From Amoeboaphelidium protococcarum X5 (taxonomy: Eukaryota > Fungi > Aphelidiomycota), in assembly GCA_023515725.1 (NCBI GenBank), contig JALDTO010000237.1, forward strand, positions 417,573 through 481,572: a stretch of 64,000 bases of DNA. The letters are read 5' to 3'. The position numbers and the translations under genes were made by a program. Below, one piece after another: positions 12,639 to 18,825 of the stretch; position 1 is the first letter of the stretch; each line of letters starts with the position of its first letter. The notes under the pieces are model-generated. The model saw nothing but the letters and a program-made list of their open reading frames with translations. It made no database searches and was not told the DNA's origin.

Positions 12639-12712
12639 TCTCCTGTAGCTCAGCTGGTTAGAGCGTTCGACTGTTAATCGAGAGGTCGGTAGTTCAATCC
12701 TGCCCGGGAGAG
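12639..12712 (+). tRNA. tRNA-Asn (GTT)
   Basis: Acceptor stem TCTCCTG/CGGGAGA, D arm TAGCTCAGCTGGTTAGAGC, anticodon loop CTGTTAA, T loop TTCAATC. Confidence 0.95.
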
Positions 12713-13312
12713 TCAATTTCAATATCAATCACGATAGTCACTTTTTAGCACTTACTAGTCTTCATTTTAGCCTAGAGAACGCATGACTCCTTCCATCTAA
12801 GGTGAAATGGTTGACTTCATTACTCACTATCATGGCAGCAATCTGCTTTGTCCACATTATTATTATAGTTTACGCGCAAACATGATAATAAGCGCCCTTA
12901 TTATTGCCAAAACAATTCTCATCAATTCCTTTCGATTAAATTAAACGATCCACCGTACGCGCCATGTACTGTACATAGATCGACTTTGAATGAATATGCC
13001 GTATAGCTTCAATCAGATTTCAACTTGTTTAACGAAAATAAAAGAAACTTGCTCAATAACCGACTAAAATATCATTATCAATTATGCTTTTGTTAATGGT
13101 ACTTAACCTCCCGTATGTTCGGGTATATTTTGAAAACAAAGATCTGAAACACTTTTTGATCTTGACCAGTTGCTCGTCATGTGACTCGATTCAGCCGAGA
13201 TTCTGATTAAATACTCACATGATTCACAATTATAAGAGGATAAAGCTTCATCTTTTCTGCTAAATGTACTTCCGAGGGAATATTTGCAAAAACACCACAG
13301 CTATACTCCGAC

Positions 13313-13558
13313 TGTTAGATGTATTGACGGTTTCTCAGGTTATGAAGATTGAGTCGTTCGCCTGTGGCTGATCAAGGGGTCCGCCTCTGTTGACACGGTT
13401 CTTCGGATAAGTAGTTTTTAGGATTGGAATAGTGAATTTGAATAATTGAAAATAATATTATCTGGAAATAGTGTTTTCCATGACTGACAAATATGTCCAT
13501 TGGAACGGTGGTTCCCGTGTCTCTGCCAATACTAATTGTAAAAGCAGCCCACGTAACA
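13313..13558 (+). repeat. 5' LTR
   Basis: Direct repeat of 17081-17326, identical by eye. Confidence 0.95.
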
Positions 13559-13680
13559 ACTTGGCGCGTCATCACAGACATACAGTCTCGGACTATGGCG
13601 GTCACAGTTTTCCCTGTGGTTATTATAATTTTGGTGTATGTATTGAGTGCTTTGAAATAAATAAATGGCAATAACAAAAC

Positions 13681-16600
13681 ATGGCACCAAAATTGTTATC
13701 TTTGGATGTGCCGGTGTATTCTGGTGACAATAATAATGCTGATGGTCTAGCGATGCATGGTGGTGTTGGTTAAAATGACATTGACAGTTTTGAAGCCAGT
13801 GGGAGTGGCGCAGCTCGCGTTGATTCCTTTTTTGAGAGTTTTGACAAGGTGGCGTTCGTAACCACGCGTGCAAACAATGCTACTAATGCTGGACAACCCA
13901 CTTCTCAGCCTAGTGTGCCTGCGTCATCTGTAGCAACTTTTTAAGGTCCTGGTAGTGCTTAGCAGACTTCTCAAGCCAATATTCCATCTACAGCTGGTGG
14001 TGGAAGTTAGATTGATGTTCAAATTTTGTTGAATGCTATTTAGGCTCTAGGGACTTAGTTGACTGGTTTTGATGCGCGTTTGTCATCTATTGAGGCTTCT
14101 TCATAGGCTTCTTAGTCAAGTAGTACTAGTAGTCCTCCCCTGAGCGCTGGTGTACAATCTGCTTAGACTCCGGCGGTGATATCATCCGCCTAAAGAAGTG
14201 ACAAGTTGAAACTTGGTGATTATCCTCGACTAAATTTACCCTCAGTGAAAGAGAGTGAGCAAGATTTAGTTGATGCATTGGCTGTTTTAAACTGGTTAGA
14301 CACCATAGACAGTCTGATGGTAAATGGTTTAACCTCTGCATCATCTGTGGTAAGCTTCTTGCCGATCTTATTGGAAGATAGAGCAAGAGATTTTTATAAC
14401 TAGATCAAGAACAGCAGTGGTAATATTTCATTCTTAACCTTCAAGAATTATCTTTTGTAGTCATTTGTTGGTCCGCCAATCGTAAGATCAGCTAGAAGTA
14501 AGTTAGCTCTCCTTATGCAGGCTGAGAATTAGACGTGTCTTGAGTATTTTGACTAAGTGTGTTCTCTATCGCGTTTGATTGGTATGGGACATTTTTCAGC
14601 GGATATGGCTATTATCAAGTTCAAGGAGACGATTAATATCAAGTATTTAGCGTCCGTTAATCCTTTACTGCCTGTGGCAAGCTCTTTGGTTGATGCGAGA
14701 GCTGTCTTGTAGTAGATTGATTTATCCTTCAAAAGCTAATATCAGGAAGCAAATGGTCAGTTTGCTGCGGGTTTCAGACAAAGTAGTAGCAATAAGAAGA
14801 GTAACTCGCAATCATGGAACCCGAAGTATAAAGTAAGTAAAGAACAGATGATAAAGTTCTTGAAAGCTCGTGATAAGAATGAGTTTCCTCATTGGGGTCA
14901 AAAGCACGTCTGTTGGCATTGTGGCAACAAAAGTCATGAAATTATTAATTGTTGGGAACTACAGAAGCTTGCTGCGGATTCTTGTTTCATAGTAACTGAG
15001 ACTGAAGACTAACTCGACAATGCCTTGCAATATCTGGAGTAAGATAGTGATTCTGATGGTGAAGTTGAGTAGGTACATGGTACTTATCTCTCCGATCGTT
15101 ATCAAAGTAGTTTTTTGTAGTATGGCGAGATTAAGACACTACATAAGAAGCATTTGGGGTCTATGAAGGCAGATTTGACATAAAGTGGGCGCTGTTATAA
15201 TCGTCCCGCAATGACTGTTGGTTTCATCAACTCGATTGAAGTCAAAGTTTGCATCGACTCTGGAGCTTCTGGGGCTCTGATTTCTGCTCGTGATGCGCAA
15301 CGTTGTGGCCTATAGATATAAATCACTTAGTCAACTCCTGTGAAGGGTATTGGAGATACTGTTTGCATGGGAGAGGTGGTAGCCTCACTGACACTATGCA
15401 CTATTTCTGGTTAAAAAGTTGAATTAGCTGTGAAATTTGATGTAGTTGAGGCTGATATCCCTCTTTTACTAGGAAATGTCGTACATTCTTAGCTAAGTGG
15501 AGTGATCGATCTGGCAAATAATATCTATACATGTACTGTAAACGGAGATTAAGTCAGCGTTCCTTTCATGCCAACATCATCTAGTCAAAATGCGTATGCC
15601 ACTTGTGACTTTTCTGATTGGGCCTTAATAGCGTGTAAAATGGTGGAAGATCATCAGATTGAGATCTGTACCAAGATGGAGATATTACCTGCTCGCATTG
15701 TAGAGCTCTAAGTCAGTGGAGTGAAAGATGGCTCTGCGAAAGTGTGTATCCCGTAGTCTTTGAGATAGAAGATTCTCCAAGAAGCACATGATAGTAAATT
15801 CAGTGCACATACAGGAGTTCACAAGATGTTTAAGACATTAATTAGAATTTATTATTGGAAGTCGATCGTCAAGGATATCCAATCTCATTGTGAGAAGTGT
15901 ATTAAGTGTGCTCAGATGAATTATTCTACTACGCGTCTATCAGGATAACTGACTCCTACTGGTGTGCCTCCTTCTAGGTGGCATACAATTGCTATGGATT
16001 TTACTGGACCTTTCACTCGTCCTGGTGTTCCATATCCTAAGTATGTTCTTGTTGTGGTGGATTGTCTAAGTAAGCGCTGTCACCTGATTGAGGTTGCTCA
16101 TAATGCTACCGCGAAGGAAGTGGCTGATCTCTTTGTTCTCCACATCTTTAAGTATCATGGATTACCCAAGAAGATCATAAGTGACAGAGACCCAAAATTT
16201 ACTGCTGAATTCTGGAAGTGTTTGATGAGTAATCTTGGAACGAAACTGGCTTTGTCAACTGCTCATCATCCTTAAACTGATGGCTAGTCTGAGAGATCTA
16301 TCAGAACTATTCAACAGTTGCTGCGTTGTACTTACTAAGCTGAGGCTGGAAGGGATTGGGAGATATTACTTGCTTTGGTTGAGTTCGCATATAACAATTC
16401 AGTTCATTCTTCCACTGGTTACTGTCCTTTCGAATTAGATAATGGAACATCGCCTTTAAGTCCATTATCATTCCTGTAAGCTATTTCTGTGCTGGTCACT
16501 AATAATCCAAATGTCGATGAATTCATCAATACGATCCATCTGAAGTTGGCGAGAGCGTAAGAAAATCTTCTGAATCTGAATAATGCTTTAGTGAGTAAAG

Positions 16601-17139
16601 ATCCAATCGCTAACTAGATGTTTCACCAAGGAGATTTGGTAATGGTCTCCAATGAGCTATTGAAGTAATTGGATCCTCTGGTTGCGTAGAAACTTCAGCC
16701 TAGATATTATGGACCGTTTGAAATTTTAGAAGTCGTTAGTCCCAACTCATATAAAGTGAATCTGCCTCCTCACTTCAGGCATCACAGGACTATCAATATA
16801 CAGTTTTTAAAGATGTACCAGGAGTTGTCGAGTCATTCTATACAAGTTGATGAGTGCGAAAGGCAGTATCCGGAAGCTGAAGTGATTGTCGCGTCTAGGA
16901 TGACGGCAGAGAAGAAGAAGCTATATTTGGTTAGATTCAAGAATTCAACGAAGGATGATGACACTTGGGTGTCCGAAGATTTGGTATTGAAGATTTGTCC
17001 TGAGTTGCTGGACAAGTTTATGTCATCCAACAAGTTGAAGTTTCCAAGTCTGAGAGCCTATGTTTAAAGAAGGGGGGAGATGTTAGATGTATTGACGGTT
17101 TCTCAGGTTATGAAGATTGAGTCGTTCGCCTGTGGCTGA
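13681..17139 (+). CDS. Single Gag-aspartic protease-integrase-chromodomain polyprotein (~1152 aa), no RT/RNase H
   Basis: No in-frame TGA from ATG 13681 to 17137. Zinc knuckle CWHCGNKSHEIINC, protease IDSGAS..LLG, integrase HDSKFSAH..CIKC, MDF, SDRDPKF, HPQTDGQSER, GPF, and chromodomain YLVRFK..DTWV. Confidence 0.9.
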
Positions 17140-17326
17140 TCAAGGGGTCCGCCTCTGTTGACACGGTTCTTCGGATAAGTAGTTTTTAGGATTGGAATAG
17201 TGAATTTGAATAATTGAAAATAATATTATCTGGAAATAGTGTTTTCCATGACTGACAAATATGTCCATTGGAACGGTGGTTCCCGTGTCTCTGCCAATAC
17301 TAATTGTAAAAGCAGCCCACGTAACA
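17081..17326 (+). repeat. 3' LTR
   Basis: Direct repeat of 13313-13558, preceded by the PPT. Confidence 0.95.
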
Positions 17327-17400
17327 CCGACAGGGAAAAACCAAGTGATAAACATAACTAAAGAATGATTTATTTGCGATTACATTCTTCTTCTGTGAAA

Positions 17401-18825
17401 ATGTTCGTCTCCGTTTCTAGGCTCATCTGGCGCACTAACACCGCTGCTGTAAAGAGTCAGGCATCATCGGCATGGTTCAATAATACTGAACGGACGCTGT
17501 AAAATATTATTGCACCCCTGGTGTCGTCTTAGGCTTTGCTGTTCAGTCAGTTGGCCAAGAAGCCGAATGTTGTGAAAGAGCATGATCCTAATGATGTTAA
17601 TAACAGTAACAATGAGAGAAAGCAAAAGAACCCATCATTCACACCTGATCGACACTATCAAGCGACCAAGCATCCAATAGTCTTATGCCATGGCCTATTT
17701 GGCTATGATAGAATTGGGCCGATTAATTATTGGACTGGTATAAGTGATGTATTGGAGTCACAGGGTGCCAAAGTGTACGTAGCGAGAGTATCTGCTGTTG
17801 GCGGCATTGAGCAGAGGGCCATTGAATTGGAAAAGTTTTTAGAGTAAAATCTGGCTGGTCAAGATGTCAATCTGGTGTGTCACTCTATGGGAGGTTTGGA
17901 TGCTCGACATCTTATAGCGCACCTAAAGAATCATACATTCAAAGTTCGATCTCTGGTCACATTGAGTACTCCTCATCGCGGCAGTCCATTTATGGATTGG
18001 ATTAGAGATCACGTTGGTGTCGGCCTGGCAGAGGATGCACGTAAGTAGGATGTTATGGCCAAAGTTATGGCTATCCTTGATGCTCCTGCATATTATAATC
18101 TGACTACAGAGTTTTTGACGCAGAAATTTAATCCATCTACTCCGGATAATCCATATGTAAAGTATTATTCGTACGGCGCCACTATTGACAATGCTAGCTA
18201 TCTATCACCACTCAGAATTCCATGGGATATTGTAAAGGCTAAAGAGGGAGAGAATGATGGTGTTGTATCTGTTTATAGTGCTCGATGGGGGTAGTATGTG
18301 CAGACACTGAAAGCTGATCATTTTGATTTGAATCGAACCAGGAAGTTTTATGATGACTGGTCTCTACCATCATTTGATAATCATGTCTTGGGTCCACTCG
18401 TTAGCTTGGCCTCATATCTGGATCCTATAGTGAAAGCTATTCCTACTCCATCACTGTCAGTTCCATCTCCAATCTTGAATCTGTCCTAGAAGATTATCTC
18501 ATCATCATCTGGAAATAACACTAGTGTTTAACAAGTGTAATCGTAACTGTAGCAACAGCAAGATCAACACCCATACTTGAAAAGAGTTCATGGTCTACTC
18601 AATCAAATTCACGGGCCAAGCAGTTGGACAGAGTACGTGTATGGTTATGAGAATGAATCTGCCAATGCCAAAGCTGTGAATAATCAGGCCAATAATGATA
18701 ATAGGGACAAGGTTCACGATCATAACGTTGATTTACAGGGAGAGAAGTTGGCAACATAGCCTAGTTTTGATGCTCGTGTGTTCTACCTAGAGGTGATGGA
18801 ATTATTAGCCAAAGACGGATTTTGA
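17401..18825 (+). CDS. Triacylglycerol lipase, Tgl2-like alpha/beta hydrolase
   Basis: PIVLCHGLFGYD, nucleophile elbow CHSMGGLDAR, TPHRGSP, and ENDGVVSVYSARWG. Confidence 0.88.

Follow-up and report, generated by a model that had tools for sequence, protein, structure and literature searches.

We analysed a stretch of 64,000 nucleotides (nt) from the genome of Amoeboaphelidium protococcarum X5 (Fungi; Aphelidiomycota), namely positions 417,573 to 481,572 of the forward strand of contig JALDTO010000237.1 (GenBank assembly GCA_023515725.1). This stretch is called the window below. A long terminal repeat (LTR) retrotransposon of 4.0 kb lies at 13313-17326 of the window. Its single open reading frame (ORF) encodes a Gag-like region, an aspartyl protease, an integrase and a chromodomain, and the reverse transcriptase (RT) and RNase H of Ty3/gypsy elements are absent from it. 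Unless a contig is named, all of the coordinates are positions in the window on the + strand, and the features are collected in Table 1. An earlier reading made from the letters alone (the sequence-only reading) had proposed that this element belongs to an RT-less family maintained by selection, and that it could be one half of a two-component retroelement system.

The two ends of the element are those of an intact LTR retrotransposon. The two LTRs, at 13313-13558 and 17081-17326, are 246 nt long, do not differ at any position and have TG...CA ends, the same CCGAC target site duplication is found on both sides of the element, and the polypurine tract AAAGAAGGGGGGAGA abuts the 3′ LTR. The identical LTRs, the duplication and the polypurine tract had been noticed in the sequence-only reading, which had also spoken of a site resembling a primer-binding site (PBS). 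This site, TGGCGCGTCATCACAGAC, starts 3 nt past the 5′ LTR and is a canonical PBS, because all of its 18 nt are complementary to the 3′ end plus CCA of tRNA-Arg(UCU) of the same genome. The matching tRNA-Arg(TCT) gene was found by a whole-genome pattern search followed by ARAGORN. In the same pattern search, the only exact PBS-sense copy in the genome was the element's own, and another tRNA-Arg-like PBS match (L037) did not adjoin any LTR end. Self-priming in the style of Tf1 was considered and rejected, as no complement of the PBS of 7 nt or longer was found inside the LTR and tRNA-Arg matched instead. At its ends, the element has what is expected of a chromovirus: paired TG...CA LTRs with a target site duplication within 4-6 bp, a PBS adjoining the 5′ LTR and a polypurine tract adjoining the 3′ LTR.

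In this genome, TAA and TAG (TAR) were translated as Gln, and TGA is the only stop codon. One frame runs without TGA from 13561 and includes 42 TAA/TAG codons up to 17079. Relatives have Q at the positions of these codons, as in HPQTDGQSE. The ORF of 1152 codons starts with the ATG at 13681, and its TGA (17137-17139) falls inside the 3′ LTR. Thus, the uninterrupted ORF and the use of TAR as Gln were both read correctly from the letters. The product of the ORF is a deposited protein of 1152 amino acids (aa), here called P0001, which was recovered through a representative-protein search. Pfam was first applied to TAR-free pieces of the translation, which worked, and these results were superseded by those on the whole of P0001.

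The Pfam profiles, the check that the sequence-only reading had named, matched the protease, H2C2, rve and Chromo and matched neither RT nor RNase H. The aspartyl protease, the HHCC and DDE integrase and the C-terminal chromodomain of a chromovirus are all present over the cut-offs. Three protease families (gag-asp_proteas, Asp_protease, and Asp_protease_2) match aa 516-598. In addition, the HHCC residues and D773/D835/E871 of the integrase are all present, so the catalytic residues are intact, as had been claimed. No Pfam gag family matched in P0001. Nevertheless, the CCHC zinc knuckle and the language-model look-alikes of this region, which at 0.94-0.96 are all Ty3-capsid, Retrotrans_gag or zf-CCHC clusters, suggest that the N-terminal part may be a Ty3-type Gag; the look-alikes are to be taken as a lead only. 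A single-sequence AlphaFold model of aa 170-440 had a mean predicted local distance difference test (pLDDT) of 38, which is too low to use. A homologue search with the N-terminal 690 aa (aa 1-690) returned only P0001 itself, and no homologues of its Gag and protease were detectable outside the source genome. Furthermore, no representative among 1.84 billion proteins exceeds 58% identity to the integrase core, and P0001 is a cluster of one among about 15 billion proteins.

Table 1. Coordinates of the RT-less element, its parts, and the autonomous Ty3/gypsy elements of the same genome
Feature	Position	Strand	Basis or remark
Left target site duplication, CCGAC	13308-13312	+	Read directly; same 5 bp again at 17327-17331
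5′ LTR, 246 nt, TGTTAG...GTAACA	13313-13558	+	100% identical to 3′ LTR
PBS	13562-13579	+	Pattern search, ARAGORN on matching loci, direct comparison
Single ORF, 1152 codons, product P0001	13681-17139	+	ATG at 13681, TGA at 17137-17139
Gag-like region	14188-15000	+	CX2CX4HX4C zinc knuckle at 14911-14952 (aa 411-424); Gag look-alikes
Aspartyl protease, ending near aa 622	15226-15546	+	DSG at aa 526-528, LLG at aa 596-598
Fusion linker, about aa 623-645	15547-15615	+	Site where the RT-RNase H module of relatives is absent
Integrase N-terminal extension and HHCC zinc-binding domain	15616-15924	+	Pfam Integrase_H2C2, aa 690-748
Integrase catalytic core	15988-16272	+	Pfam rve, aa 770-864; D..D35E pattern
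Tf2-1-like SH3 domain, integrase C-terminus	16630-16818	+	PF24626 (SH3_Tf2-1), aa 984-1046, E = 3e-15
Chromodomain	16873-17025	+	PF00385 (Chromo), aa 1065-1115
Polypurine tract	17066-17080	+	Read directly; abuts 3′ LTR
3′ LTR, 246 nt	17081-17326	+	100% identical to 5′ LTR
Right target site duplication, CCGAC	17327-17331	+	Read directly; other locus version colinear here without the element
Four autonomous Ty3/gypsy elements	L001:2316-7387, L002:2713-7880, L003:1413-6903, L004:2604-8004		5.07-5.49 kb; LTRs 100% identical

The absence of RT and RNase H was confirmed in several ways. No RVT or RNase H family was found in P0001 by Pfam even at E ≤ 10, and the YxDD motif is absent from all sense frames of the element. 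Six-frame searches of the genome gave 27 matches to RVT_1 and 18 to RT_RNaseH, and none of them was on the contig of the element. Thus, two parts of a chromovirus are lacking, the RT domain (RVT_1, YxDD) and the RNase H before the integrase. The relatives with 44-54% integrase-core identity all have the order PR-RVT_1-RT_RNaseH-H2C2-rve-SH3-Chromo (PR, protease). From the end of the protease match to the start of the H2C2 match there are 92 aa in P0001 versus 577-658 aa in these relatives, so the protease is indeed joined to the integrase by a short linker, as had been reported. In the alignment, aa ~646-689 of P0001 match the linker of the relatives between RNase H and the zinc finger, and on the protease side homology (to a relic in L038) extends to about aa 632. 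By this spacing and these limits of homology, what is missing is the RT-RNase H module in its entirety, some 1.5-1.7 kb, with the neighbouring domains left whole and the frame kept. With 1.5-1.7 kb restored to 4.0 kb, the element would be about 5.5-5.7 kb long, which equals or slightly exceeds the length of the genome's autonomous Ty3/gypsy elements (5.07-5.49 kb).

Such a structure could in principle be an assembly artefact, in which the protease part and the integrase part of an ordinary element were joined by collapse or chimerism. A misassembly at the joint was also one of the cases that the sequence-only reading had proposed to look for. We found nothing in favour of this explanation and regard it as hardly credible. 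In the Logan contigs of two runs of the source sample, a single 3582-nt piece covers 13529-17110 with 0 differences in each run. Because these independent read contigs span the protease-integrase joint without mismatch, the joint is not a misassembly. The depth of the element in the two runs was 92.2 and 79.8, and that of the flank contigs was 86.5 and 108.4; the element thus has the depth of one locus version. A near-identical full-length sibling would raise the depth of the shared parts and would probably break the contig at the joint, and neither sign was seen in the reads of the source strain.

Within the 23.6-Mb genome, as in the source reads, the internal region occurs only once. Its sole other match at the DNA level is one 88-nt scrap at 74% identity, and no second copy with the same protease-integrase junction was found in the genome or in the source reads. 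The LTRs tell more of the history of the family. At least 10 full-length solo LTRs occur elsewhere with 89-97% identity, nine of them have their own perfect 5-bp duplication, and shorter LTR variants are also present in the genome. The nearest LTR relative is only 97% identical. Since the solo LTRs have their own 5-bp duplications, the family was inserted many times, and nearly all of its members have collapsed to solo LTRs. The proposal of an RT-less family is therefore not supported: the internal region occurs once, and the other members are solo LTRs, which preserve nothing of their internal architecture.

The element is present on one of two diverged locus versions. The second version, on contig C192, has flanks of about 83% identity and is colinear through the insertion point without the element, which makes it an empty site. 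This empty form was also present as a Logan contig at equal depth. Two diverged versions of at least this locus, a genome of 23.6 Mb, TAR as Gln and TGA as the sole stop would all suit an aphelid. The element lies 74 nt upstream of the ATG at 17401 (window 17327-17403), which starts a long + strand ORF. The second locus version has this downstream gene at 91% identity, and the 3′ LTR could act on the gene. A tRNA-Asn gene (12639-12712) lies 600 nt upstream of the element. As this gene is not at the insertion point, Pol III targeting in the style of Ty3 was rejected. In another sample labelled as the same species (runs X6 and X7), only rearranged scraps of the family were found, which comprise gag and integrase parts at 85-95% identity. 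One join in this sample runs from 14983 (the end of gag) to 15873 (the integrase zinc finger) across 23 foreign letters, and strand-switch joints also occur. A hot-spring metagenome (run X5) contained about 6% of the 31-mers sampled from the element.

The long intact ORF might also suggest a Gag-protease-integrase-chromodomain gene that was domesticated by the host and is now under host selection. However, the LTRs, the PBS, the polypurine tract and the target site duplication have all been kept in full, and the element is absent from the second locus version. Furthermore, the examined contigs of the other strain have only empty-type variants of the flanks besides the rearranged scraps, and there is no orthologue among about 15 billion proteins. 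Domestication thus seems extremely improbable.

More can be said about the ancestry of the element from decayed copies. A protein search of the genome found relatives of P0001 at 35-68% identity. One relic on contig C207 (C207:683976-684826, minus strand; L038:4474-5521) is 35-38% identical to P0001 in a broken frame. It consists of the end of Gag and the protease, then about 90 nt, and then the chromodomain, and no RT, RNase H or integrase is found in it. On contigs C98 and C264 (L045:4685-5154 and L048:4791-5158), remnants of RT are found 70-150 nt away from integrase C-terminal scraps with 54-68% identity to P0001. The latter two are scrambled relics of RT-bearing relatives of the element. 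RT was therefore once part of this lineage, and internal deletions, whose breakpoints vary, are a common fate in this genome. Apart from the element and the C207 relic, a chromodomain search of the genome gave no match at any located RT-bearing element, so no second chromovirus lineage was detected in the genome.

We propose that the element arose from a chromovirus by a one-off in-frame deletion and is unable to copy itself as it stands. This is the most economical account, and we consider it probable. The ancestor would have been a chromodomain-bearing Ty3/gypsy (chromovirus-type) family primed by tRNA-Arg, the only surviving internal copy of which is the one described here. A single in-frame internal deletion of about 1.5-1.7 kb would have removed the whole RT-RNase H module, and we infer that this was a one-off event. 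Either templates were switched in the reverse transcription that gave rise to this copy, or a full-length copy inserted first and then lost the segment in the chromosome. The source of this copy would since have been lost, as was most of the family through LTR-LTR recombination. If it is transcribed, the element would give a polyprotein of Gag, protease, integrase and chromodomain. However, no cDNA would be made from it, and because there is no RT and thus no cDNA, the element cannot copy itself.

In the sequence-only reading, the seamless fusion, the intact catalytic residues and the full use of TAR as Gln were taken as signs of selection. We do not agree with this interpretation. LTRs that are 100% identical mean that there was no time for decay, so the intact ORF and the intact motifs show youth, not selection.

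Several points weigh against a one-off deletion. No full-length sibling is found in the genome or in the reads, so that the deletion is not directly demonstrable. The sequence-only reading had named a single copy nearly identical to a full-length element as the case that would speak for a recent deletion; the element is indeed a single copy, but the full-length counterpart was not found. In addition, as the nearest LTR is only 97% identical, every scenario involves a source copy that is missing. Finally, the deletion is unusually tidy: it is in frame and near the boundaries of the mature RT-RNase H, and both the protease and the N-terminal extension of the integrase are complete. Such tidiness is somewhat lucky for a random event.

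One explanation for this tidiness is that the copy was made from an aberrantly spliced RNA of the parent, in which a cryptic intron over the RT-RNase H part was removed before the RNA was packaged and reverse-transcribed by the proteins of the parent. This would account for the clean internal loss together with the identical LTRs and the target site duplication. Nevertheless, there is no parent sequence and hence there are no splice sites to check, and nothing obliges introns to respect domain borders. The varied breakpoints of the other relics also fit plain deletion better. We therefore think that splicing is quite unlikely to be the origin of the element.

The remaining explanation is a true non-autonomous lineage, in which the RT-less element is transcribed, its own proteins carry out packaging and integration, RT is provided in trans, and the present copy was made from an RNA that already lacked RT. 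Some observations agree with it. Identical LTRs and a target site duplication are the product of reverse transcription and integration, and the source reads are without a full-length sibling. The excision is modular and in frame, and the protease, the integrase extension, the catalytic residues, the PBS and the polypurine tract are intact. There is also a precedent, IAP 1-delta-1, in which an in-frame deletion gave a fusion ORF and the element is mobilised in trans (PMC6466679). Furthermore, Ty3/gypsy elements of at least four families, which have identical LTRs and an intact RT, share the genome and could be candidates for a helper.

However, these candidates differ from the RT-less element in several ways. 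In the four autonomous elements of Table 1, gag and pol are in the same frame and are split by a single TGA, which suggests that their Gag-Pol is made by readthrough, whereas the RT-less element has one open frame. Their PBS regions do not start with TGG: after the LTR they begin with CTTAACACG or AACACG, so that the PBS is a different one. The LTR bodies are unrelated, with only the generic TGTTA start in common, and LTR searches of the genome returned only solo LTRs of the element's own family. The integrases are only 20-27% identical, no similarity of Gag or protease is detectable between the element and the four families, and none of the four has a chromodomain by the search of the genome. 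Such dissimilarity makes it unlikely that these helpers co-assemble with the RT-less element or co-package it.

Autonomous and non-autonomous partners are recognised by a common PBS, matching LTR ends and a promoter half of the LTR that both have (PMC11302176). By these measures the four families do not qualify as partners of the element, because the PBS, the LTR bodies and the integrases differ, no Gag or protease similarity is detectable and the chromodomain is lacking. For its part, the element does not share a PBS, LTR termini or a promoter half with them, and multiple copies of the same structure are missing. In the genome as a whole, no RT-bearing element shares the LTR, the PBS or the chromodomain with it. 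The sequence-only reading had suggested a search for RT-bearing helpers with the same LTR and PBS. None was found among the Ty3/gypsy families of the genome, which leaves the idea of one half of a two-component system without support.

A non-autonomous lineage is also disfavoured by the single copy, the junction of which no other copy shares, and by the distance of the nearest LTR relative (97%). It requires two missing elements, a master and a partner that is either missing or very distant, whereas a one-off deletion requires only one. We thus regard such a lineage as unlikely. It is similarly doubtful that the element is a working non-autonomous chromovirus, which would do its own packaging and integration and would borrow only RT-RNase H from an unsampled partner or a distant Ty3/gypsy element. 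If it were true, as further copies with the same junction would indicate, reverse transcription alone would be outsourced, and the particle, the protease and the targeting integrase would be the element's own. To outsource only RT is an arrangement that is not described as a class in the literature examined, and the two-component reading would then give a modular two-component LTR retroelement.

As it was found, the element is a well-documented case of an LTR family that is dying out, with solo LTRs, scrambled relics and a last copy without polymerase. In addition, no other retroelement lineage with a chromodomain was detected in this genome, which is small and has a reassigned genetic code.

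Compared with the Ty3/gypsy chromoviruses (Tf1/Tf2-like elements with a single ORF), the element has the same TG...CA LTRs, 5-bp duplication, tRNA-type PBS and polypurine tract. It also shares with them a CCHC knuckle in its putative Gag, the DSG protease, the HHCC and DDE integrase, the Tf2-1-like SH3 domain, the C-terminal chromodomain and a single Gag-Pol frame without a stop. It differs from them in that RT and RNase H are wholly absent, and in that its Gag and protease have no detectable homologues outside the genome.

Similar cases were also sought among proteins. Of 150 representatives whose integrase is similar, four apart from P0001 have 350 aa or more ahead of the core and no RT or RNase H. 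The only one of them with Gag, protease and integrase, a fern protein (P0068) of 942 aa, was not counted as a precedent, as its gene range is 11.5 kb (L050:6001-17523); it is most likely a gene model spliced together across transposon debris, and so probably an annotation artefact. A plant protein (P0150) with Gag and integrase was not counted, because no genomic context is on record.

Partly coding non-autonomous LTR families are on record in plants, including sugar beet (PMC13570524). Like TR-GAG, LARD, TRIM and these sugar beet families, the element is an LTR element without a complete pol (PMC13570524). However, those are families with decayed domains, whereas here there is one copy with an intact protease and integrase in one frame. 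Membership of TRIM, LARD or TR-GAG was ruled out, as the element codes for a complete integrase with SH3 and chromodomain, plus a protease. The pairs RLG_Cereba/RLG_Quinta and BARE-1/BARE-2 are also comparable, since a partly coding LTR element relies on enzymes made elsewhere (PMC11302176). In these pairs, the PBS, the LTR termini and the LTR promoter halves are identical and both partners are abundant, and RLG_Quinta keeps only Gag (PMC11302176). Unlike them, the present element shares its PBS and LTR body with no RT-bearing element of its own genome.

The closest functional precedent is mouse IAP 1-delta-1, in which an internal in-frame deletion also gave a fusion ORF in an LTR element that is immobile by itself (PMC6466679). 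In the present element, too, an internal deletion appears to have fused the flanking coding parts in one open frame. In IAP 1-delta-1, part of gag and pol was removed, the element is multi-copy and is mobilised by coexisting full-length IAPs, and the fusion protein was shown to act in cis (PMC6466679). The present element differs in that there is one copy, with no sibling in the genome or the source reads. As a single copy on one of two locus versions, it looks like a one-off deletion of a chromovirus and not like a new class of element.

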